Of a stretch of DNA of 64,000 bases, positions 4,378 to 59,745 are shown one piece after another; position 1 is the stretch's first letter; every line of letters begins with the position of its first letter. The notes beneath the pieces are model-generated. The model was not told where the DNA came from, ran no database searches, and saw only the letters and a list, made by a program, of their open reading frames with translations. Made by a program: the position numbers and the translations under genes. This DNA comes from Histomonas meleagridis 2922-C6/04-290x (lineage: Eukaryota; Protista; Parabasalia), in the NCBI GenBank assembly GCA_020184695.1, contig JAANOX010000075.1, positions 62,001-126,000 of the forward strand, in the 5' to 3' direction.

Positions 4378-6800
4378 ATGAAGAAGCAAAAACTATTAAA
4401 TGATATCGAAATTCATCAATCAATCATGCAAACCCTCTTTAGGTTGGCTAAAACAAATATTATAGAATCAGCAAATTCAATAATTGACATTTTTGATGAA
4501 AATCATCCTATTTCATTCAATTTTATATTAGCCCAAACAATATATACAATTTCCATGTTCAGAATGAATGACTTTGATATTTATTCAAAATTTTTAAAAC
4601 AAATTGAAATATTTGAAGAAAACAACAAAATTAATTCAAAAATTTTTGATGTATTTGAAGGTATACTTCTTTCTAAATATTCAGAAGAATCAAAGTATAT
4701 TCTTTATTATCTTTTTGAAAATAAATTTCTTCAGAGTCCAAAGGTTGATTATAAAAGAACCAATGGATGTTTTGCACATCACATGACGCAAGAAGAAATT
4801 AATGAATATTATTGCTATGGAATTAAACAGTATATAAAAAAACATTATGAAGAACTTTCAAAGAATGATTGGGAACTTCATAAGAAATATATTGAAGAAG
4901 GACATAATCCAAAATGAAATAACAAAAATAATTCGAGACGATGAAATTGAAAAACTTCAAGAAATATCATCACAAAATGATTTTGATTTTAATCAAATAA
5001 TTGAACCATCAGTTTATGAAAGATGTGATTTTATTAATCAATATCGGATTACATTAATTGAATATGCAGCATTTTTTTCTTCAGTTAAATGTTTTAAATA
5101 TTTACTTATGAATGGTGCAAAAGTGGAAAACACAGGTAAATATGCAGTTGCAGGTGGAAATGAAGAAATTATTCATTTATGTGAACAAAATCATTCATCA
5201 TTTAAAGATGCATATGAAACAGCAATTAAATTTCATTGTAATGATATCTTTAAATATCTTTATGAAAACAAATTAGAAGATATCAAAAATTTGGAATTTT
5301 TAGGAAAGAAATGTATCAAATGGAACAACTATGAACTCTTTACATATTTGCAAAAAGAAGGAATGGAAATTAATGATGATATTATTAATGCAGCTGCAAG
5401 AATTGGAAATAAATATCTCACAAAATATTTTATGAAAGAGCATCACACTCCAAAAGATATTTTAGGTTATTCATCTAAATCAGGAAATATTGAACTTGTA
5501 AAATACATTTTAGATCAAGAAGGAACTGATATTAATGCTGAAGATATTCATTTGTTTTATTTGAAATTTATTTTAATAATTTGATATTTCAAAATAATAT
5601 TTGGAAATTATTTCAAATATTTAATACAGCACTTATGTGGGCATCTGAAAAGGGTTATACAGAAATCGTTAAATTACTTCTTGAACAAGAAGGAATTGAT
5701 ATTAATGCTATAGATATTTTTTTATTTTATTTAAAATTTATTTTATTAATTTAATATTTCAAAATAATATTTGGAAATTATTTAAATTAAATAGTTCAGC
5801 ACTTATTTGTGCATCTTGGAAAAGTCATATAGAAATAGTTAAATTACTTCTTGAACAAAAAGGAATTGATATTAATGTTCAAAATCTTTAGTTGTTTTGT
5901 TTAATATTTGTTTTGATAATTTGGAATTTCAAAATGACATTTGGAAATTATTTAAATTATTTTATACAGCACTTATTTGGGCATCTTCAACTGGTTGTAT
6001 AGAAATCGTTAAATTACTTCTTGAACAAAAAGGAATTGATGTTAATGCTGAAAATATTTATATGTTTTGTTTTTTATTTATTTTAATAATTTTATATTTC
6101 AAAATAATATTTGGAAATTATTTAGAATACTTGAAACAGCACTTATTAAAGCATCTTATGAAGGTTATACAGAAATTGTTAAATTACTTCTTGAACAAGA
6201 AGGAATTGATATTAATTCTAAAGACATGTATTTGTTTTATTTGAAATTTATTTTAATAATTTGATATTTCAAAATAATATTTGGAAATTATTTCAAATAT
6301 TTAATACAGCACTTATGTGGGCATCTGAAAAGGGTTATACAGAAATCGTTAAATTACTTCTTGAACAAGAAGGAATTGATATTAATGCTAAAAATATTTA
6401 TTTGTTTTCTTTAGAATTTATTTTAATAATTTTATATTTCAAAATAATATTTGGAAATTATTTAAAATATTTAATACAGCACTTATATTAGCATCTTATA
6501 ATGGTTTTATAGAAATTGTTAAATTACTTCTTGAACAAAAAGGAATTGATATTAATGCTAAAGATAATCACTTGTTTTGCTTAGAATTTATTTTAATAAT
6601 ATTGGATTTCAAAATATTATTTGGAAATTATTTAAATTCTTTAAAACAGTACTTATGAAAGCATCTTCAAGAGGTCATACTGAAATCGTTAAATTACTTC
6701 TTGAACAAGAAGGAATTGATAGTAATGCTAAAGATATTTATTTGTTTAATTTAGAATTTCTTTGAATAATTTAATGTTTCAAAATAATATTTGGAAATTA
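4378..6800 (+). CDS. DUF3447-type ankyrin gene with 17-nt-insert repeats; one homopolymer frameshift (~4913); broken at ~6800 by a foreign insertion
   Basis: ORFs 4378-4917 and 4847-5584 join after removing one A (GHNP-NEITKIIRDDEIEKL). Followed by 8 repeat units at exact 170-nt spacing. Confidence 0.8.
5521..6800 (+). repeat. Tandem 170-nt unit = 102-nt ankyrin repeat + 4 x 17-nt inserts
   Basis: aggaa(c/t)tgat recurs at 5521, 5691, 5861, 6031, 6201, 6371, 6541, 6711 (period exactly 170). Confidence 0.97.
5546..5622 (+). other. Example set of four 17-nt inserts (5546-5562, 5566-5582, 5586-5602, 5606-5622) flanking single codons GAA, GAT, GGA
   Basis: gat[attcatttgttttattt]gaa[atttattttaataattt]gat[atttcaaaataatattt]gga[aattatttcaaatattt]aat aca gca ctt reads D-E-D-G-N-T-A-L after removal. 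Confidence 0.9.
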
Positions 6801-18498: not shown

Positions 18499-19402
18499 GA
18501 GGCATGGAGCAGGGGGAGTAAAAACTGGTGGAGGAATAGGATACGGTTTTTCATCGTCTTCCGACTGTATTGATTCGGGACAAACATTAATTTTCCAAGA
18601 CGATGCGTTTGTCTAAGAAAGTTTGGAATCGCACATTGTAATATCTAAAAGCGTTAAAGATGTGTTTACTTGATAGTTGTGCATACCATAAAAATAAGGT
18701 TCTCTTTTTTGCTTTGAGGAGACAAACCTCTTTCATTCCTCTAAAAGCTTTAGGAAAACTTGTATATGGCACCGGGCCATGTATATCCCAAACTTGTACT
18801 TTGTTTTATTATTTTTGTTCTAAATTCAGGATGAGTTTCATTTGTCTGCAAGATAGTGTTTAACAGAGCATTTTCCCACATGACGTCATGTGTTATTTTA
18901 TATCACTCAATTTTACAAAAAAATACCTTACAATTCATATTGACTAAATTTTTGAGAAAATCATTATTTTAATTTCAGATTATAAAAATGTATAATTTTT
19001 TAATTTAAACAAAACTTTAAATTTTATTATAGATTTATTCTCTAAGGTATAAATATGTATGTGTATATACAAAATTTTACTTTTCCCTTTGGATCAAATT
19101 TTCGATTTTGAAAAATTTGATAACTTTAAAATGAATGGATCTCCCAAGACCCATGGAAAAACATCGATGTTTTTGAGTGTGATTATATGATTTATTAATC
19201 TAATGATAATTGATTTCTTTTCTTTTTGTCTATATAAATATCGTCATTTTTATGTCGAAAATGATAAGGTAATTATTTGTCCGTTATGGTATTTTAATTT
19301 TAAGTGTGCTAACACATTTTTTTCGTTTGGAAAATTTTACTTTATTTTTGCCATGATCCAAAAATTAACGGTTTTTTCATTTTTTTTCTTTCGGATTTTT
19401 TC

Positions 19403-22400
19403 ATGGAAACAAGTTCAAGTGATCAAAATATTATTGCGCAAATATTAACAGACCTCAAGCATATAATTTTTAATTTGACTGAAAAAAATTTTGATTTATC
19501 TATACAACAAACAATGAACTTGTTTGATTCAAATTCACCATATTCTTTCGATGTTATAATATGTATTTTTGTTTTATCTGCATTTTCATCACTTAGGAAT
19601 GAAAGCGATATATATATTCGCTATTTACAATCAATCCAATCCAAAGAAGAAGAGCTAAACAAAGATAATCCAAAAATCATCGAAATATTTATTAAATATA
19701 TTGCTCAACTTCAAACACAAGAAGCATATTATTTCCTTGAACAGATGATTACTCATAATTTTGTTGATTCAAGTATTACTAAAAACATGGATACTAATTA
19801 TTTCATACATTATCGCTCAAAAAGTGTAACAGATATTAATAGTGTTTCTTATAAAGATGTTTATGCTTTATCATTTTTAGAAAACTTTTCAAAAATATCA
19901 ATGAATGATTTTGAATTGCATAGGAAATATGTTAAAATAGGACATAATCCAAGTGAAATTGGAGAAATAATTCGAAATGATGAAATAGAAAAACTTCAAG
20001 AATTATCATCACAAGAAGACTTTGATATTAATCAAATAATAGAACCATCACTTTATGAAAGATGTTCATTTATTAATCAAAATAATGTTTCGTTAATTGA
20101 TTATGCAGCATTTTTTTCAGCAGTTAAATGTTTTAAATATTTACTTATGAAAAATGCAAATGTAAATAAAACAGGAAAATATGCAGTTGCAGGTGGAAAT
20201 GATGAAATCATTCATTTATGTGAACAACATCATTCATCATTTGAAGGTGCATATGAAGCAGCAATTAAATTCCACCGAAATGATCTTTTTTATTATATTT
20301 ACGAAAATAATTTAGAAGAATTTGATGGATTTGTTCAACCAAATCCACGAATGAATAGAAATACTGATCAATTTTTACGCTTGATTATGAATAATCATAT
20401 TCATGGAACTAACTTTTTGCAATTAATGGAAAATCTAAATCCTTTGGATAACAATCAAATTCCGCAGAATTTAAATGATAAAATAATTAATAAATTAGTT
20501 GATGAATGTATTCACAATGGAAATTATGAAATCCTCTTATTTTTGGAAGATAAAGAAATAGAAATTAAAGAATCAATTATCAATGAAACAGCAAAATTTG
20601 GTAATTTATATCTTATCAAACATTTCCTTCAAAAAAATACAATACCAAAAAATATTTTGTTGTTTGCAACACAATCAGGAAATAATGAACTTGTACAATT
20701 TATACTTGAACAAAAAGATTTTGAAATTGATTTAAATATAAAAGAAATTTCTTTTATTAATTTGATATTTAATGAAAATATTTGGAAATTATTTAGATCA
20801 TTTAAAACGCCACTTATGATTGCGACTGAAAAAGGTTATGAGAAAATAGTTAAATTACTTCTTGAGCAAAACGGAATTGAAATAAATGTTAAAGATATTT
20901 ATTAATTTAATTTCACATTTTTTTGAATATTTTGATGTTTTGATATATTATTCGGAAACTATTTATATCATTTAATACATTACTAATTAAAGCATCTATA
21001 AAAGGTAATATTGAAATAATTAAAATGCTTCTTGAACAAGAAGGAATTGATATTAATGCCAAAAATGTTAATTTATTATGTTCAATGTTTATGAAAGAAT
21101 TTTGATGTTTTAATAAAATGTTTAAAATTTGTTCAAATTATTTTATACAGCACTTATGAAAGCATCTGAAAATGGGCATATAGAAATAGTTAAATTACTT
21201 CTTAAACAAAATGGAATTGAAATCAATATTAAAAATATTAATTAATTTCATATAAATTTGATTTTATTATTTTGCAATTTCAAAAGAAAATTTGGAAATT
21301 ATTAAAATGATTTGAAACAGCATATATATTGGCAACTAAATGTGGTTATATTGAAATAGCTAAATTACTTCATGAACTTGGAAACAATGATATCAATTTC
21401 AAAACTATTTTATCATTTTAATTGAAGTTTATTTTAATGATTTGGTATTTCAACTGAAATTTTGGAAAAACAACACTTATGTTGGCATCAAGAAATGGAC
21501 ATTTAGATGTAGTTAAATTTCTTCTTAAACAAGGAGGATTTGATATTAATGAAAAAGATGTTCATTAATTTCATTTAAAAATTATTTATTTAATTTGCCA
21601 TTTCAAAATAATATTTGGTGTTTGTTTGGGTTGTTTTGGACAGCACTTATGTTAGCATCAGCTAATGGTCATTATGAAATAGTTAAGTTATTACTTGAAC
21701 AAAAGGGAATTAATATTAATTATCAAGTTTATTTATTTTATTTAATGATAATTTAAAAAATTTTATATTTTATAATAAAAAATGGAATTTATTTTAAATA
21801 TTTGAAACAGCACTTATAGAGGCAGTAAAATGTAATAGCAGTGATATTGTTAAATTACTTCTTAAACAAGAAGGAATTGATATTAATGCTAAAGATGTTT
21901 ATCTGCTTTATTTATTATTTATTTCAATAATTTTATGTTTCAAAATGATATTTGGAATATAATAAAAAAATTTATTACAGCACTTATGATAGCATCTAAA
22001 AAAGGATTTTTAGATATTGTTAAAATGCTTATTGAACAAAAAGGAATTAATGTTAATGATAAAGATATTTATGGTATTTTCATAATTTATTTAATACTGC
22101 ATTTTTATATTCATGTGGAAATGGCCACACGGAAATAGTGAAATTACTTCTTCAACAAAAAGGAACTAATGTAAATGATAAAAAAATTTATTTATTTTAT
22201 TTTCTGATATTATAAAATATTATATGGGAATTATTAAAAATATTTTCTACAGCTTTAATGAATGCATCTAAGTTCGGTTATATAGAAATAGTTAAATTAC
22301 TTCTTGAACAAGAAGGAATTAATATTAATGCAAAAAAAATTTATTTGTTAAATTTGATATTTATTATAATAATTTGATATTTTAAAGTAATATTTGGAAA

Positions 22401-23603
22401 TTATTTGAATTGTTTTATTCAGCATTGATATTAGCATCTTTAAATGGTTATGCAGAAATAGTTAAATTACTTCTTGAACAAGAAGGAATTGATATTAATG
22501 CTAAAGAAATTTATTTGTTTTATTTGATATTTATTTTAATAATTTGATATTACAAAATAATATTTGGAAATTATTCAGATTATTTAATACAGCACTTATT
22601 TTGGCATCTCAATGTGGTCATACAGAAATAGTTAAATTACTTCTTGAACAAGAAGGAATTAATATTAATGCTCAAACAGTTTATGTAAATTATTTTATTT
22701 TTGTTTCATTGATATAGTATTTTATTATAATGTTTGGTGTTAATTTAAATTATTTTGGAATACATTAATGTTTGCATGTTCAGCTGGAAATAATGAAATA
22801 GTTGAGTTAATTCTTGAACATAAAGGAATTGATATTAATGCTAAAAATATTATTTTGTTAAATTTAATGTTTATCTTAAAAATTCGAAATTTAAAATATA
22901 TATTTGGAATGTATTTGAATTATTTCAAACAGCATTAATGCTTGCATCATATGCAAATCGTTTGAAAGCAGTTAAATTGCTTCTTGAACAAGAAGGAATT
23001 GATATTAATGCTAAAGATAATATTCGTTTTAAAGACATAATATTTTATAAATGAATTTGATAATTATTTTCATCTTTTGAAACAGCATTTATGATAACAT
23101 CTAAAAATGGTAATATCGATATAATTAAATTACTTCTTGAAAAAGAAGGAATTGATATTAATGCTAAAAACAACAAAGGAATGACAGCAATTTTACTTGC
23201 AGCTGATTTTGGCATGAAAAATATGGTTGATTTTCTTTCTACAATAGAAGGAATCGAATATGATAAAGAAAAAGCAGACAAACTAATTCTCAACCCACAA
23301 CAAAAACATCTTCGCCGTAATCTAAGAAATGTTATTTTCAATAAAGTTGACCATTGTTCAGCTGAACAAACGGGTAGAGATTATCTAAATGATAGAAGTT
23401 ATTTCTTATGCTTAACATGCAAAATTCTTCCTCCTTACTCCATATGTAGAGAATGTGCAAGGGTTTGTCACAAAGGTCATCACATGATGGAAATAGAACT
23501 GACAAATAATCAAGGATTCTTTTGTGATTGTGGTGTTGGCGATTGTGTTTTAGAATGTAAGCTAATGCATACACATAAACACAAAAAGGAAACAGATGAA
23601 TAA
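19403..23603 (+). CDS. DUF3447-type + ~16 ankyrin repeats + C-terminal UBR-type zinc finger; 53 x 17-nt inserts; reconstructed 1,099 aa
   Basis: 4201 nt minus 53x17 (901) = 3300 nt = 1100 codons. Manual translation finds no stop before TAA 23601-23603. C-terminus CSAEQTG...FLCLTC...SICRECARVCHKGH...FFCDCG. Confidence 0.85.
20744..23183 (+). repeat. Ankyrin array with 17-nt inserts; hairpin linkers of 83, 80, 66, 63, 32 and 15 nt
   Basis: 16 linkers counted by hand; each parses as codons plus n x 17 nt (n = 0, 1, 3 or 4). Confidence 0.92.
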
Positions 23604-23700
23604 AAATTAAAGTCTAATATTAATACACATTCTTAGATGTATAAATTAATTTGATGTTAAAAGTATAAAAATGAAAAGATATTATGAGAAAAAAACTTGT

Positions 23701-24426
23701 TTATTCGTATGTCACCTGTTTTGAAACACGGCCAGAAAGAAGAACTACTTCTTTAGCTTGTTCTTTTTTCTCAACCACTTTAGGTTTAGTCTTCTTCTCT
23801 GGACGAGAAATCTTCTTCCTTTTAACTGTCTTTTCAGGTGCAATTGTCTTAAGTCCTTGAGCTGAAAATGCATATGAATTTTTCTTTGCTTTCAAGAGTT
23901 TCTTTTCATGAAGAGATTCAAGAGTCTTCTTGGTTCTCTTTGGAATGAATTGGGGTAATCCCTCATCCATATAATCCTGTAGATATTGTTTGATTTTCTG
24001 ATAACTAATGTATTTGTTGTCTTCTGTTGTAAGATTAAAGATTGCCTCACTAACCCACTTAACATAAATGCTTCTATTTTCCTTCTTTTCAGTCTTTTGC
24101 TTTGTTGACTTCTTTGACTTTGTTGATTTCTCTGTAGTTTTCTTGGTTGGCTTTGTGGCTTTCTTCACCATCTTCTTTGTAGTTGTTTTCTTGGTTGTAG
24201 CTTTCTTTGAACCATCTTTCTTTGTACTAGTTTTCTTTGGGCTTGCTTTCTTTTTATCAGTTGTTGTTGTTTTCTTCTTTGTAGTTGTGGCCTTCTTATC
24301 ATTTGTCTTCTTTTTTGGAACGACTTTCTTTTTGGTTTCAGTCTTCTTTGTTGTAGTTTTCTTGACTTTCTTTTCTTCTTCCTTTTCCTCTTTGGCTACA
24401 GTATCTTTCTTTTTCTGTTCAGACAT
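23701..24426 (-). CDS. Linker histone H1-like protein
   Basis: Lys/Thr-rich N-terminal arm, winged-helix-like core (SIYVKWVSEAI...ISYQKIKQYL...KKTLESLHEKKLLKAKKNSYAFS), basic C-tail. Confidence 0.7.
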   Translation of the reverse strand: MSEQKKKDTVAKEEKEEEKKVKKTTTKKTETKKKVVPKKKTNDKKATTTKKKTTTTDKKKASPKKTSTKKDGSKKATTKKTTTKKMVKKATKPTKKTTEKSTKSKKSTKQKTEKKENRSIYVKWVSEAIFNLTTEDNKYISYQKIKQYLQDYMDEGLPQFIPKRTKKTLESLHEKKLLKAKKNSYAFSAQGLKTIAPEKTVKRKKISRPEKKTKPKVVEKKEQAKEVVLLSGRVSKQVTYE

Positions 24427-33526: not shown

Positions 33527-36038
33527 TTATTTTCTTTTTTTCTTAATTATTTCTGCAACTTCTTGTCCATCTTTTCCCAAATTATTTGCATAAAAGAGTG
33601 CGTTTACAAACAAATCAAATAAACACCAAACACATGAACCAAACTAAAACAATACTAATGAAACACTCAACAAAACGAAATAACATTTTTAATATTTATA
33701 TCAATGCCTTCTTGTTCAAGAAGTATCAAAGCAACTTCGGGGTGATAAAATTCCAACGAAACCATTAAAGCTGTAGAAAAACAATTAAATAAATTCCAAA
33801 TATTCAACATAAACCATATTATCTTTCACATTTAATTTAATATCCTTATGTTGCACGAGTTTTTTAACAATATCAATATGACCACCTCTAGCAGCAGATA
33901 TAAGAAAAGCTTCGAATAACATTAAAAAACTCCAAACAAACAATAAAAAACAAGAAAAGAACAAAAACAAACATCAAAAATATTACATAAACATTTCGTT
34001 CATTAACATCAATTCCTTCAATTCCTAAAAGATAATCAATAAGTTCCATGTTATTGAAGCCTATAGACATTGTAAGTGGTTTAAAAAACAATTAAAGAAA
34101 CGTCCAAAAATTATATTAAAATATATAAATAATGAACAAACCTTTGTACATTTTCTCAATACTAAAGCCGTCTTGTTTCATAATGTAACTGAAGAATTCC
34201 GGATTCCCTGAAAATATGACCTCTGTGAGTATCTTTTTCGAGTATGGAACTTTCTCACTAAAACATTTGAACAAAAAGATGTCGCCGCAATTAGCAACTT
34301 CATTAAGAATCTTATCATCAATAAAATCGCCTTTCGTAAGTAGAAATGATAAAAGTTCATAGTTGTTGTAGAAGATGCAGAGAGTTAACAGCTTCTTCAT
34401 GTTGTCGAGTGTGAAATTGTCCTTAATTGGGCTTAGCGAATCTTCCTTATTATTATCGTTTGGTTTTTCGTCTTTTTCGTCATTGTTTTCATTTTCTTTG
34501 TTATCCTCATTCTTTTCATTTTGCTTTTCTACATTTTCTTTGTTGTCGTTTTCGTTTTGTTTTTCATTTTCGATATTTTCGCCTTGTGTTTCTTCTTTTA
34601 CATTTTCCTTGTTATCCTCATTTTGCTTTTCATTTTCTTTATTATTGTTTTCACCATTTTCAGAATCACCTAATAATTCGAACATTGACTTTATATCTCC
34701 GAATAATTTACCGAAGAATGCTCCAGGATTTAGTTCTCCTTCGTCTCCTTCATCTTCATTAGGCTTATCTTTATCATCCTGATGACTTCCGAATAACTTA
34801 CTAAAGAATGTTTCATGATCTCCTTCTTTTTCAGGTTCATTTGTATCATTTTTATTACTTCCGAATAACTTGTTAAAGAACGATTCATATTCTGCTTCAT
34901 CTTTTTCACCTTCATTTTGTGGAGGTTCAAGTTCATTCTTATGACTTCCAAATAATTTACCAAAGAATGACTCATGGTTTGTTTCTTCTTCTACTTTAGG
35001 ATGTTGCTGAAGATTTTGTTGATTTCCTAAATTAGCAAACATTGTTGGGTCAAAACCAGGTAATGCATTTGCTAAAGAGCTCGAAATCTTTGCAAGATTG
35101 TTTTGAATTTGTTGCATGTTATCATCTAATTGAGGTATTCCTTTATTTTCATTTAAGTCTTCGATTTGACTATCGAAAAGATAATGAAATATTTCCTTCC
35201 TATTATATTCGATTGCTTTTTCAAACGCTCCTCTAAATGTCGAATTGTTTTGTTCGCATAAACGAATAATTTCATTGTTTCCTCCTGCAACTGCATATTT
35301 ACCTGCGTTTTCGACTTTCGCTCCATTCATAAGTAAAAACTTAAAACATTTAATAGCGCCTAAAAATGCACAACATTCTATAAGTGTAACATTTGCTTCG
35401 TTAATAATCGAATTCTTCTCATAGAGTGATGGTTCAATGCATTGATTAAAATCAAAGTTTGGTTGAGTGGACATTTCTTGAAGCTTTTGAATGTCATCTT
35501 CACGAAGAACTTTAACAAGCTCTGATGGATTAACGCCTTCGTTTGTTAATTCTTTTTGAAGTTTCCAATCATTAGCTGATAACTTATTATAGTTTTCACG
35601 AAATTCTTGATAAAATGGGAAAAATAAAAGATCTTGATTAGGTCGATATTGTTGGAAATAAAATGTTCGAATCTTTTGAACAAAATCTGTATCGATTAAG
35701 CCTTGTAAAATCATTTTATTAAGTATGTAATATGCTTCTTGCTTCTTAACTTTAGCCAGATAGTTCCTAAAAATTCTTGTTATTTTTGGTACATTTGTTG
35801 AATTATCATTTTTACTTTCGAGTTTTTTTAAATATTCACAAATAATTTCTGGCTTTTTACATTGAGATTTAAATGATGCATATAATAATTTGGAAATAAT
35901 TAAGTTAGAGGTATATGGGAAATTGTAATCAAATAATTCAATTGTTGATTGAACTGATGACTCAACATTACTTTCATCAAAACCAAAAATGATTTTTTGT
36001 ATTGTTAGTAAATTTTGAAGATCGCTTAATGTTTGCAT
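33527..36038 (-). CDS. DUF3447-type ankyrin gene with acidic internal insert and 13 hairpin inserts
   Basis: The track ORF stops at 34116 inside the first insert set. Removing 51+70+34+68 nt gives 763 codons with hairpins KYGF, NDLGE, DNMGS, NSLGV, ending at TAA 33527. Confidence 0.75.
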
Positions 36039-41315: not shown

Positions 41316-44045
41316 TTACTTTTGTTGAGAAAATCCAAAACTCCAACAATTGCCCCATTGCGAATTACCCCAACCACCACCGCCAGACGGAGGTCGACCT
41401 TTGTTGCTTCCAAAAGTACTCCCTGATGCCCAACTATTCATTGGATGCTGGGTAGAAGGAGTAGTTGATGCAGCCCAACCATATAATGATGTTTGAGCAT
41501 TAGTTGAACCCCAAACTCTTGACCCTAATTTACCAAATGAATTTCCTGCTTTCCAAGTGCCACAACCTGTTGATTGATTGTTGACATTTATTACACCCCA
41601 ACAATCTTCTGAAGATTTATTAATAATTGGGCGATAATTTTTACTTATACATGTATCTTCTTCTTTAAGCAAATAAACAATTTGGGAATTTTTATTTTTA
41701 GTTGCATAATTTAGTGCTGTTTTATGTATTTTAAAGGATTACCTAATATCATTATTTAATATTATAAAAATAAAATAAACTACATATAAAATAAAATAAT
41801 ATCTTTAGCATTTTTATCAATTGCTTTTTGTTCAAAAAGTAATATTGCTATATTTCTATGACCTCTATCACAAGTATAAATTAATGCCGTTTTAAACTAG
41901 TACAACAAATATCATAAATTATTTTGAAACACAAAAAAGAATTCTTAGAAGCAAGCCCATAATATGTAAAACTTACATCTTTTGCATTGATATCAATTCC
42001 TTCTTGTTCAAGAAGTAATTTGACTATTTCCATATAACCAAATCTAGATGCAAATATAAGTGCTGTATAATCAAGTTTATATTATTACCAAATACTATTC
42101 CGAAATCTAAAATTAATATAATAAATATTATCTTTAGCATTAACATCAATTCCTTCTTGCCCAAGAAGTAATTTAACTATTTCTACGTGATCATTTTGAG
42201 AAGCCAAAATAAGTGCTGTACTAAATAATTGAAATAATTTTCAAATAATAATTTAAAATATTAAATCATTAAAATATTTATTACTTTTAGTATTGGCATC
42301 AATTCCTTCTTTTGCAAGAAGTAATTTAACTATTTCCGTATGACCATTAAAAGAAGCTAAAATCAGTTCTGTACTAAATAATTGGAATAAATTCCAAAAA
42401 ATATTTTAAAACAATAAATTTTTAAATTATTTATTATTTTTAATATTGGTATCAATTCCTTTTGGTTCAAGAAGTAATTTGACTATTTCTGTATGACCAC
42501 ATCTAGATGCAAACATAATTGTATTCCAATTTTTTTTTAAATAATTCCCAGATAATTATTTGACATACCTTACTGTTGAAATGAATATTACTTGTAGCAT
42601 TAACATCAATTCCTTTTCGTTCTAGTAGTAATTTAACTATTTCCACATGATTATTTTGAGATGCTTAAATAAGTGCTGTTTTAAATATTTTATATAATTT
42701 CCAAATATTACATTTAGACCAAATATTTTAAGATTAAACATTATTATTATAATTAATATTAAATGCATCTAGTTTAAGAATTCTTTGAAAAATATCAATA
42801 TAACCTTTTTCACATGCTAATAGAAGTGATTCATTAAATAATATAAGCCAAAATTCTAATTATTAAATAAACATTCAATATAAAAAATAAATTATATTAT
42901 TAGTACAACTTTCATATTCAAAAATTAAATTAATAAGATCCAAATTTCCATATTGGGTTGCAAATAATAAAGTAATCCAGGAATTGGATTAATCTCAAGA
43001 TAGTAGTTAACAAGAAAGAAATTGCCAACTCTTGCAGATTCATTAATTATTTTATTATTGATTTTCATTCCTTCTCCGATTAAAAAATTAAGAATTTCAA
43101 AATTGTCATAATTAATACAAAATTCTCCAAATTTACTAAGATCAAATGTTTTAGGATTAGAATTATTTTCATAAAGATAACGAAAAACATCATTTCGATG
43201 GAATTTAATCTCTATTTCTAAAGTGCCTATAAAAGATATGTGATTTTGTTCACACGAATGAATGATTTCAAGATTTCCACCTGCAACTGCATATTTACCT
43301 GTATTATTGTAAATAGATTTATTTAATATTAAATATTTAAAACAAATAATTGATTCAAAAAATGCTGCATAATCAACTAATCTAACATTTTCCTTATTAA
43401 TAAATGAACATCTTTCATAAAGTGAAGGCTCAATAGTCTGATTAAAAATAAAATTTATTTGTGATGCTTTTTCGATGAGTTTTTCTATTTCATCATTTCG
43501 AATTATTCTTGCATTTTCATTTGGATTAATCCTTCTTCAACATATTTCTTATGAAGGACCCAATTATTACCTGAAAGTTCTTCATAACTATTTAAAAATA
43601 TATTACAAAATGGATCATTGTTATTTTTTATTTTATTTTGTGAATCAGTTTTATAATATGCAAAATATTTTGATTGAATATTTGTTGTGATATTTGAAAC
43701 AATTAATTTTTTCTTAATCATTTTTTCAAGAAGATAATTCGATTCTTGTGTTTTTTCGTCCGGGGGGCTTTGTGTAAACATTTCAATAAGCTTTAAATTA
43801 GTGAACTCTTTTTCTTTTGTTTGTATTGCTTGTAAATATATAAAATATGTTTCATATTTTTCTTTCATAGAAGCAAAAGCATGTTTAACAAAAGAACAAA
43901 TAATATTATTACATGGATAAATAAAATAAGTATCAAGTAGATTTATTGTTTGTTGAACAGAAAAATTTATATTTTCTTTGTTTATATCAAACACAATTTG
44001 TTCGAGTTGTTGTAGCCCTTGAATTGAGGTGAGTTTATTGGACAC
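41316..44045 (-). pseudogene. DUF3447-type ankyrin gene with 17-nt inserts and Gly/Trp-rich tail; probably inactivated
   Basis: Frameshifts near 43520 and 42970, in-frame TAA near 42666, and a TAG micro-exon near 42100. Eight insert-containing linkers at 41721-42895. Confidence 0.7.
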
Positions 44046-57226: not shown

Positions 57227-59745
57227 ATGAGTTTTCAAAGTTTTTCAAACATGAATGAATTGGAACTTCTCCAAAGAATTCATCAAGTCATCACTAATTT
57301 AAGTAGAGAAAATTTTGCACAATCACTAAGTTCAATACTTGAAACAATTAAATCTCAATATTCATATTCTATTTCCTTAATTATCAGCCAAATTATATCT
57401 TCACCATTTACAATTCTGGAGAAAGATTTTAATTTGTATATTGATTTTATGAGAGAAATTGAAAAATTTGAAGAAATTAATAACATTACACCAACAATAT
57501 TCGAAATATTTAAAGATTTTACTCTAGATGGAGACATACATGACGCAAATTATTTTTTTGGAATCCTATATGAACAAGATTTAATTGATCTTCGCACTAT
57601 TCAAAGTTTAAAATGTCCATATTTTGCCCATTTTATATCAAAAGAATACCTTAAACCAAGTAATAACGTTCCTTTTACTAGTTATATCATTGACAATTAT
57701 GAAGAACTTTCAAAGAATGATTGGGAACTTCATAAAAAATATATTAAAGAAGGACATAATCAGGATGAACTTGCAAAGATAATTCGAAATGATGACATAG
57801 AAAAACTCCAAGAAATGGCTTCACATCCAAATTTTGATTTTGATCAATATATTGAACCATCACTTTATGAAAGATGTGATGTAATAAATAATGAAAACAC
57901 TACACTAATTGATTATGCAGCATTTTTCGGCGCGATTAATTGTTTTAAATATTTGTTAATGAATGGTGCAAATGTTGAAGATACAGGTGGATATGCAATT
58001 TCAGGTGGAAATTTTGAAATTGTTCATTTATGTGAACAGAATCATTCATCTTTTTATGGAGCGTTTGAATCAGCAATTGTATTTAATCGAAATGATATTT
58101 TTTATTATCTATATGAAAATTATTCTAAAGGGAATAAAATTTGTAGACTTAGTAGTCTCGAAGAATTAGGGGTGTATTGTGTTATGTATAACAATTTTGA
58201 AATTTTATCATTTCTAATTGAAAAAGGTATGAAAATTAATGAAAAAATTATTGCTCAAATATTAAAAACGGGAAACTTATTCCTCTTTAAATATTTATGT
58301 AATGAAAATCAATTTCCAAAAGATGTTTTAATTATGGCATCAGAATCAGGAAATGTTGAACTTGTTCAATATATATTACAAATAAAAAACATAGATATAA
58401 ATTATAAAAACATTTTTTTGTTTTATTTAAATTTTGTTTTAATATTTCGATGTTTCTCAATATTATTTGGAAATTATTTAAATTATTTTATACAGCACTT
58501 ATTTATGCATCTAAATTTGGTCATCCAGAATTAGTTAAGTTCCTTCTAAAACAAACTGGAATTGAAATAAATGCTAAAACTATTTCTATATTTAATTTGC
58601 AATTTTATGTAAAATAAATTTCATGTTTCAAAATAATATTTGAAATTTAAATGAACTATTTAATACAGCACTTGCACTTGCATCATATAATAATCATTGC
58701 GAAGTTACTAAATTACTTCTTGAGCAAAAAGGGATTGATGTTAATTGTAAAAATGATATTTCACTTAATATTATGAAATTTCATATTAATATATGGAATT
58801 TATTCAAGTTTTTTGATACGCCAATTAATTTAGCATGTAAAAGAGGTCATATTGATATAGTTAATTTACTTCTGATACAAAAAGGAGTTGATGTAAACCT
58901 GCAAAATATTCGTTTATTTGTATTAAAGTTTATTATTATAATTTTTTATTTGAAAATAATATTTGGAAATTATTTGATTTATTTAATACAGCACTTATAT
59001 GGGCATCATCTAATGGATATTCTGAAATTGTTCAATCTCTTCTTAAATGTGAAAAAATTAATGTTAACATTAAAAGTATTTATATATTTAATATAATATT
59101 TTCTTTACAAATTTTCTATTCATCGAAAATATTTGGGGATTATTACATTTATTATTTACTGCATTATTCGGAGCATCTCAATACGGTCATATAAAGATAG
59201 TGCAATCACTTCTTGAACATGAAGGAATTGATATTAATTCAAAAGATATTTAATTAATTCATTTAATTTTCATGAAATCAATTTGATGTTATTAAATAAT
59301 ATTTGGAAATTATTCAAATTATTTTATACAGCACTCATATTTGCTGCTCAGAAAGGTAACGTAGAAATAGCTCAATTGCTCCTTTCACAAAATGGAATTG
59401 ATATTAATGCTAAAGATATTTGTTTGTTTTATTTAAAATTTCTTTTGAATTTATAATGTCTCTCTATAATATTTGGAAATCTTTTAAATTATTTAACACA
59501 GCTCTTTCTTGGGCTGCTCAAAATGGTCACACTCAATTTGTTAAATTACTTCTTTCGCAAGAGGAAATAAAAACAAATATCAAAAATATTTATTTGCTGG
59601 TTTTAATATTTGTTTTAATATCAAAAAATTTCAAAATAATATTTGGAAATAATTTTTAATACTTCAAACAGCATTTTCACTTGCAACCGAAAATTCACAT
59701 GATGAAATTGCTAGACTGCTCGATGTAACATCTAATCTCTCTTAA
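57227..59745 (+). CDS. DUF3447-type ankyrin gene with 31 hairpin inserts; reconstructed ~663 aa
   Basis: 2519 nt minus 31x17 (527) = 1992 nt = 664 codons, no internal stop by manual translation. Hairpins NKDGY, NDEGD, NKFGN, SNSGF, DNDGY, DKNGN, NNKGQ. Confidence 0.85.

Follow-up and report, generated by a model that had tools for sequence, protein, structure and literature searches.

Ankyrin Linkers Interrupted by 17-Nucleotide Units

The window analyzed here is a stretch of 64,000 nucleotides of Histomonas meleagridis (contig JAANOX010000075.1, positions 62,001 to 126,000, assembly GCA_020184695.1). It is nuclear DNA of this organism, and its importin open reading frame (ORF) has a letter-for-letter match on contig WSYJ01000138.1 of assembly GCA_020186115.1. 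The H. meleagridis genome paper, which reports 43 Mb, 28% GC, an AUGUSTUS annotation and 573-638 introns, leaves ankyrin and splicing unmentioned (PMC8529796). Our subject is a set of 17-nt A/T-rich inserts, hereafter units, that interrupt the linkers between ankyrin repeats and number more than 120 in this 64-kb window. The principal host gene lies at 19403-23603 on the plus strand and consists of an N-terminal DUF3447 domain, an ankyrin array and a C-terminal UBR-box zinc finger, as placed by Pfam hits (DUF3447, Ank and zf-UBR) on its uninterrupted pieces; the N-terminal domain matches an H. meleagridis paralogue and DUF3447 proteins of Tritrichomonas foetus. The gene holds 53 units of 17 nt in 15 linkers, and its 16th linker is without a unit.

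The ankyrin array has a period of 170 nt, made up of an 87-nt open core (repeat positions 4-31 plus the K31 codon) and an AT-rich linker. Continuous reading of the linker breaks the frame, and the ankyrin turn is restored when the linker is parsed as five codons of which the first four are each followed by a 17-nt insert, so that in the example at 5540-5625 the parse gives E-D-E-D-G-N followed by TALM. The five codons correspond to ankyrin repeat positions 32, 33, 1, 2 and 3, i.e. the hairpin turn between consecutive repeats, and the codons retained in the 40 full linkers follow the ankyrin consensus, with Asp or Asn at position 32 in 36 and Gly at position 2 in 33 of them.

We write the state of a linker as four digits for slots 1-4, in which 1 is a unit present and 0 an empty slot. 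Slots were called with slot-specific position weight matrices (PWM) trained on full linkers and applied to the partial ones. Within the gene, the reference four-unit linker near the family consensus is at 22506-22588 (units 22509-22525, 22529-22545, 22549-22565 and 22569-22585; codons GAA GAT GAT GGA AAT) and has the gene's top PWM score (56.6), and a full four-unit linker with RNA support is at 21557-21639 (units 21560-21576, 21580-21596, 21600-21616 and 21620-21636; codons GAT AAA GCC GGT TGG). Slot 4 is empty in the 1110 linker at 21404-21469 (units 21407-21423, 21427-21443 and 21447-21463; codons ACT GAA GGT GGA AAA), whose parse stands 30 bits above the next. The linker at 22064-22095 is 0001, with its one unit at 22076-22092 between GGT and AAT (codons GAT ATT TAT GGT AAT). 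Slot 2 is empty at 22183-22248 (1011; units 22186-22202, 22209-22225 and 22229-22245; codons AAA TCT GAT GGG TCT), where the parse scores 28.6 vs 13.4 for the next and each unit is classed to its own slot, and slot 1 is empty at 23016-23081 (0111; units 23022-23038, 23042-23058 and 23062-23078; codons GAT AAT AAT GAT GAA; 8.7 vs -7.8). The gene's last linker, 23169-23183, is 0000 and reads AAC AAC AAA GGA ATG in frame within the ORF 23091-23603.

Two further linkers of the window extend the series. On the minus strand, the linker at 33775-33823 is 0011 (units 33814-33798 and 33794-33778; codons GAT AAT ATG GGA TCT; 4.1 vs -5.6 bits). In a second gene (57227-59745), the three-unit linker at 58752-58817 on the plus strand is best parsed as 0111 (units 58758-58774, 58778-58794 and 58798-58814). 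That parse, in which slot 1 is empty, scores 18.3 bits, only 1.7 more than the 16.6 of a parse with slot 2 empty, and the slot is therefore ambiguous. The preliminary description of this DNA had proposed that these seven shortened linkers gain or lose inserts in exact quanta, and each of them indeed consists of five intact codons plus inserts of exactly 17 nt, which number from none to four. The slots it had assigned were reproduced by the PWM parse, 58752-58817 being the only ambiguous one.

Linker Lengths Are Quantized

To measure every linker, cores were anchored with a hidden Markov model built from the window's own repeats. The set comprises 78 linkers from the window, a second H. meleagridis locus (L002) and a metagenome contig (L001), and the sample of lengths amounts to 85 kb from two contigs. 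Counted with the K31 codon, the exact quanta of 18 + 17k were filled by 40 linkers of 86 nt, 12 of 69 nt and one each of 52, 35 and 18 nt. Without that codon, the same linkers form peaks at 83 (40 linkers), 66 (12), 49, 32 and 15 nt, the positions that had been predicted. Twelve more are one codon longer or shorter (five of 89 nt, three of 32 nt and one each of 83, 72, 66 and 15 nt). The length of a linker is thus 15 + 17k, because up to four autonomous 17-nt elements separate its five codons.

For 15 of the 38 linkers that are not 86 nt long, the deviation from that length is an exact multiple of 17 (binomial P = 1.5e-9 at p = 1/17). The quantized presence or absence of whole units is therefore real and far beyond chance, and, as had been surmised, the pattern is not one of random AT-rich deletion. 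A version of that explanation in which small random genomic deletions are filtered by selection, so that only exact one-unit removals leave the gene working, has in its favor that any other outcome gives a frameshift and a stop, and that there are decayed arrays as well as linkers of off-quantum length (70, 85 and 87 nt). However, microhomology at the unit edges is only 1-2 nt, which leaves slippage no reason to respect exact boundaries, the 15 of 38 exact multiples are far above chance, and the off-quantum lengths are for the most part off by ±1 nt at homopolymers, in an assembly based on Nanopore data. We consider this version very improbable.

The off-quantum linkers mostly differ by ±1 nt in A/T homopolymer runs or adjoin degenerate cores. 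Elsewhere in the assembly homopolymer frameshifts are also present, and 1-nt frameshifts in A-runs split the N-terminal domains of two family members (window 4895-4905, ~43527 and ~42975); these are Nanopore homopolymer errors or pseudogenes. The ±1-nt off-quantum linkers, such as the one of 70 nt at 42595-42526, probably have the same cause.

Units Are Absent from RNA and Present in DNA

Assembler contigs of public sequencing runs were aligned to 19300-23800; the RNA runs (X3 and X4) and the DNA run (X1) belong to different studies. After position 22075, exactly 17 nt are absent in all of the RNA depth (16.3 of 16.3 in X3 and 63.2 of 63.2 in X4), and in the DNA run none of a depth of 645.5 lacks the unit at 22076-22092. 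That DNA result goes against precise excision at the DNA level, one of the readings first put forward for the exact boundaries, and against programmed DNA elimination of the kind known for ciliate internal eliminated sequences. A second type of evidence comes from RNA contig record 11, which aligns with 0 mismatches in the pieces 21314-21406, 21463-21559 and 21636-21726. The 5 letters that join 21406 to 21463 fit two retained codons after a 1-nt boundary slip, and the 8 letters that join 21559 to 21636 fit three retained codons, also after a 1-nt slip. The RNA alignment breaks at 20746|20747, 21406|21407 and 21559|21560, and the RNA contigs of two runs stop matching at 20746, which is the last base before the gene's first unit. 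The unit boundaries that whole-unit absence had fixed in the genome are thus confirmed independently by the RNA contigs, and directly so at two of the linkers cited in the preliminary description.

Unprocessed RNA contigs occur in the same run at lower depth. Record 12 crosses 21724-21806 intact (depth 7 vs 38), and record 13 keeps three upstream units while the unit at 22076 is absent; therefore, removal proceeds unit by unit and is not strictly ordered. RNA contigs that come from paralogues part from the window sequence at 23021|23022, and their loose ends are uninterrupted turns of the form GGA AAA ACA GCA CTT. The loose ends of DNA contigs, by contrast, carry unit-like sequence, and the DNA contigs are collinear with the window.

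The coding consequence agrees with this picture. Deletion of the 53 units from 19403-23603 yields an ORF of 3,300 nt that encodes 1,099 amino acids, has one terminal stop and ends in the UBR box, and keeping any single unit brings a stop after 1-23 codons (median 11). The units are cut out of the transcript, leaving single-codon exons, and so the inserts behave like a previously undescribed kind of tiny intron. Translational bypass or recoding does not describe them, as there are RNA contigs without units.

It might be argued that the RNA deletions arise from paralogues, from a strain whose DNA is free of units or from assembly error, and that units are not removed from RNA at all. The different studies, the contig data with guessed run types and one fixed single-nucleotide polymorphism (23237 T>A) would allow this. 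Against it, the spliced RNA contigs, which align to the window over 244-331 nt with 0 mismatches, lack units at four separate linkers. Both processed and unprocessed forms are also found within one RNA run, the units are there in DNA contigs whose depth is that of a single copy, and the 1,099-amino acid ORF exists only on unit removal. Such an artefact is extremely improbable.

We also considered one ordinary GT..AG intron of ~80 nt for each linker. A hand check of 5540-5625 and 21889-21976 found no GT..AG pair that keeps the frame, and the lone removal of the single unit at 22076 likewise rules this candidate out.

Sequence of the Units

A logo of 160 units reads R-T-T-T-(A)...A-T-T-T, with A (63%) or G (30%) as first base and T in ~90% at each of the last three, so that the consensus RTTT-N9-ATTT (RUUU-N9-AUUU in RNA) is common to all four slots. 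The slot consensus sequences are ATTTATTTGTTTTATTT for slot 1, ATTTATTTTAATAATTT for slot 2, ATTTCAAAATAATATTT for slot 3 and AATTATTTAAATTATTT for slot 4. Units are ~9% G+C. As for a branch-point adenosine, a single A is conserved across the four slots (70-87%); it occupies position 14 and lies 3 nt from the 3' end. In the gene at 19403-23603, none of the 53 units has GT..AG ends; they start with AT (29), GT (13) or AA (8) and end in TT (45), AT (5) or TC (3), and the RNA gap at 22075 allows the registers TA..TT, AT..TT or TT..TA. The slots are distinguishable, with identity of 0.64-0.69 within and 0.49-0.62 between slots, and in leave-one-out classification 82% of units fell to the correct slot.

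The units are better conserved than the codons they separate. In the array of seven four-unit linkers at 5540-6645 on the plus strand (gene 5456-6730), the inter-unit codons are 0.40-0.57 identical between repeats compared with 0.78-0.95 for the flanking units. Across all full linkers, the codons at positions 33, 1 and 3 vary much more (0.37-0.56) than the units, whose conservation is at least that of third codon positions in the cores. Variable codons between conserved units could reflect diversifying selection on the hairpin tip or a strong constraint on the units.

No structure emerged from the linkers as RNA, since RNAalifold predicts 0 pairs on 43 linkers and five single folds gave z-scores of -1.1 to +1.3 relative to shuffles. 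Rfam has no match in the window. In a scan of the window for PWM-positive 17-mers whose removal joins two open frames, each of at least 50 codons, all hits fell within ankyrin linkers, the one exception being a weak match at 19371 (PWM 8.0), slightly upstream of the start of the gene and attributable to chance.

Gain or Loss of Units

The partial linkers are in the states 0111 (six), 1011 (three), 1110 (two), 1101, 0011 and 0001 (one each), besides 0000. None of the four three-unit states is nested in another, so that they cannot all stem from gains in one fixed order; they call for a minimum of three exact losses or else for recurrent gains. The units retained in partial linkers classify to their own slot in 29 of 39 cases, and the slot-specific consensus is common to different genes of the window, to the second H. 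meleagridis contig (L002) and to the metagenome relatives L001 and L004, whose N-terminal domains are only 40-49% identical. Because the same four slot-specific units recur across all of these, the four-unit linker predates these gene lineages. We infer from this comparison of sequences that the four-unit state is ancestral and that partial linkers would result from repeated precise loss.

The opposite course is one of stepwise gain, in which linkers were first uninterrupted and units were inserted slot by slot, by reverse splicing or by copying of a neighbor, with the partial linkers as intermediates. A nested series 0000, 0001, 0011, 0111, 1111 does exist, uninterrupted linkers are found (23169-23183 and L001 1848-1865), and units that have one architecture, RTTT-N9-ATTT, in all slots could derive from one another. 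However, the states 1011, 1101 and 1110 fit no single order of gains, the partial linkers are isolated among four-unit neighbors, and the match of retained units to the slot consensus across genes and relatives implies a four-unit ancestor rather than fresh insertion. Stepwise gain thus seems improbable, although less so than randomly placed deletions.

A better contender would dispense with most or all new deletions and have a few old empty-slot states shuffled among linkers by gene conversion and by unequal crossing-over between unit-free and unit-bearing linkers. The array at 42067-42748 on the minus strand is instructive here. By PWM parse, four of its linkers share the state 0111; therefore, the three-unit state was inherited through repeat duplication, and states can spread in this way. 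The family member that contains it (44036-41800, minus strand) is probably a decaying copy, since it is frameshifted, one core (42679-42596) contains a stop and one micro-exon (linker 42135-42067) is TAG. Terminal runs of empty slots (0111, 0011, 0001 and 1110), as a one-sided conversion tract would give, also account for 10 of the 14 partial linkers. The internal empty slots (1011 in three linkers and 1101 in one) would, on the other hand, need two tract ends within ~40 nt, where homology is limited to 3-nt codons and short AT-rich units. Shuffling moreover still requires an original exact loss and so complements loss as much as it competes with it; as the whole explanation, it is somewhat unlikely.

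A Proposed Explanation and Its Weak Points

The explanation that we favor is that up to four autonomous 17-nt A/U-rich elements separate the five turn codons in DUF3447-ankyrin genes, and that each element is excised from the transcript on its own, leaving single-codon exons. Linkers with fewer units may have come from exact deletion of whole units, as in intron loss, and some partial states would then have spread by repeat duplication. The likeliest route of loss would be recombination with cDNA of partly or fully processed transcripts, which is the standard explanation for exact intron loss. Selection would act as a filter, in that a unit retained or imprecisely deleted shifts the frame and ends the protein within ~20 codons; only exact 17-nt quanta would survive in working genes because other changes shift the frame and truncate the protein. 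Taken as a whole, i.e. autonomous RNA-excised units of 17 nt, a four-unit ancestor and exact whole-unit losses, we put the probability of this explanation at roughly 70%.

Several points weigh against it. Off-quantum lengths are found in 10 of the 78 linkers. Parsimony and slot homology are the basis for the direction of change, and stepwise gain is another way to read the nested series described above. For the 168-nt flanking cores, the maximum-likelihood tree is star-like, with 1 of 34 branches supported, and cannot polarize the events; the partial linkers are scattered in it and no more clustered than shuffled labels, so that the tree neither helps nor contradicts loss. The partial linkers show no consistent 3' bias or joint loss of neighboring units of the sort that the classic cDNA model would predict, although the picture is mixed. 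In the gene at 19403-23603 the last linker is empty and another is in state 0001, whereas the gene at 57227-59745 keeps four units in its last linker, and several of the losses are single and internal. Lone loss of single internal units through cDNA would need partly processed templates or very short conversion tracts. As to the RNA data, the alignments are of contigs and not of reads, the run types ("RNA?" and "DNA?") are guessed labels, and the window's own spliced RNA contigs are known by the coordinates of their pieces and the sizes of their gaps and not by their letters. Finally, position 23237 is T in the assembly and the DNA run and A in all depth of both 2023 RNA runs, which points to a strain difference of at least one polymorphism between the RNA and DNA sources, with RNA editing as the less likely alternative.

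The means of excision is a separate matter. Ruler-type recognition of two linear U-rich end motifs by a spliceosome-derived pathway comes fairly close to an even chance, and a dedicated endonuclease plus ligase is a possible, somewhat less probable candidate. On a further reading, tentatively held and as probable as the latter, the units would be non-spliceosomal and the substrate of a new RNA cut-and-rejoin system of tritrichomonad parabasalids, one that measures 17 nt between U-rich end motifs, tolerates single-codon exons and serves tens of thousands of sites confined to ankyrin hairpin turns. If so, units that are gained, lost or retained might, along with the rapidly changing codons between them, help to diversify or regulate the binding surface in a very large family of ankyrin proteins. 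The chance that the excision is the work of a categorically new machinery is substantial.

The Gene Family and Its Relatives

Contig depth, in DNA and RNA runs, is more than 1000-fold higher over the conserved DUF3447 part (window 19904-20356) and over the linkers. This raised depth points to a very large family and hints at thousands of linker copies, although a copy number cannot be read from summed depth. In the recorded gene calls (GCA_020186115.1), no gene covers the arrays at window 57227-59745 or at 12600-20743 of L002. The family seems largely absent from public annotation, so that proteome, expression and comparative studies of this poultry pathogen overlook a large family of ankyrin genes.

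The short metagenome contigs L001 and L004 (ENA ERZ25039391 and ERZ28614869) hold members of this gene family in which linkers are 86 nt long and the slot consensus is unchanged, so that relatives, or Histomonas itself, were present in those samples. A scan of JGI metagenomes for the 26-mer of slot 3, GGA and slot 4 gave no hits. In T. foetus (GCA_001839685.2), DUF3447-ankyrin genes at L003:11640-12400 and L005:11486-11700 change frame at the repeat linkers, and the annotated DUF3447-ankyrin proteins end at the first such frame change. An ambiguous hand parse suggests short inserts of ~17-19 nt there, which would start with GT, end in AT and lie between single codons; if these are real, the system is older than Histomonas and the unit length is not 17 nt everywhere.

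Intervening sequences of 17 nt that lack GU..AG ends and lie 3 bases apart reach or pass the limits known so far for exon size and for the recognition of splice sites. Exact presence or absence of single units gives their boundaries at nucleotide level without experiment and makes each unit an independent, heritable and losable element. The system therefore offers a tractable test of minimum intron and exon size and, in its many natural loss events, material for the study of intron loss.

Comparison with Known Introns and Elements

The units fit no known intron class tested, and full-text searches of the literature gave no description of these inserts in Histomonas, Dientamoeba or trichomonads. 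Of the features of U2-type introns, they have removal from the transcript, being in the DNA and absent from RNA contigs, but not the GU..AG ends (0 of 53 units). U12-type (AT-AC) introns require 5' ATATCC and 3' AC, whereas units start with ATTT, GTTT or AATT and end in TTT. For splicing of the tRNA type (bulge-helix-bulge) or IRE1 type, neither RNAalifold nor the single folds gave a conserved helix or stem-loop. An origin as transposon-like elements, such as miniature inverted-repeat transposable elements or introners, is at odds with ends that are direct (ATTT...ATTT) and with codons that differ on the two flanks.

The non-canonical introns of euglenids and Amoebophrya are, like the units, intervening sequences of nuclear mRNA without GT..AG ends. 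They are variable in length and defined by end pairing or repeats, whereas the units are fixed at 17 nt and their pairing is neither predicted nor conserved: both ends are U-rich (RUUU and AUUU) and non-complementary, and the consensus shows no euglenid-type end pairing. Micro-exons of 3 nt in animals and plants are spliced accurately and resemble the single-codon exons described here, but they are isolated, often alternative and flanked by long canonical introns, whereas here up to three follow in a row, each between two 17-nt units.

Precise intron loss mediated by reverse transcriptase is established for yeasts, fungi, plants and animals. The partial linkers resemble it in the exact removal of a whole element, in flanking codons that are untouched and in presence or absence among paralogues. 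In its classic pattern such loss is 3'-biased and removes neighboring introns together, whereas here single units are missing 3 nt from intact neighbors and there is no consistent 3' bias.

The introns of trichomonads have an extended 3' motif, ACTAACACACAG. The unit logo is without a 3' motif of the ACTAACACACAG type, and CTAACACACAG, with up to 1 mismatch allowed, has no match in the window. Trichomonas vaginalis has 63 canonical introns with extended motifs, the shortest of 23 nt, and the likeness to the units lies in the same phylum and in short introns within an otherwise intron-poor genome (PMC12316389). Besides the 3' motif and the GT..AG ends, which the units lack, the difference is one of number, with more than 120 units in a 64-kb window compared with some 60 introns in the T. 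vaginalis genome.

The nearest parallel is found outside the phylum. The introns of Stentor coeruleus (15/16 nt) and Mikrocytos mackini (16/17 nt) are ultra-short, uniform and AU-rich and have conserved internal sequence (PMC9505925, PMC10245619). They resemble the units in their tiny, near-invariant length, AU-richness, conserved internal sequence and removal from RNA, although of the defining features tested only the invariant tiny length is common to the two. Introns of Stentor and Mikrocytos occur in all kinds of genes with ordinary exons between them and have GU..AG ends, which the units lack, whereas the units have RU...UU ends, occupy four consecutive codon junctions with 3-nt exons between and, within the 85 kb, are confined to ankyrin linkers. 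For the mode of working, a length ruler, the introns of Stentor and Mikrocytos may be the closest analogue.

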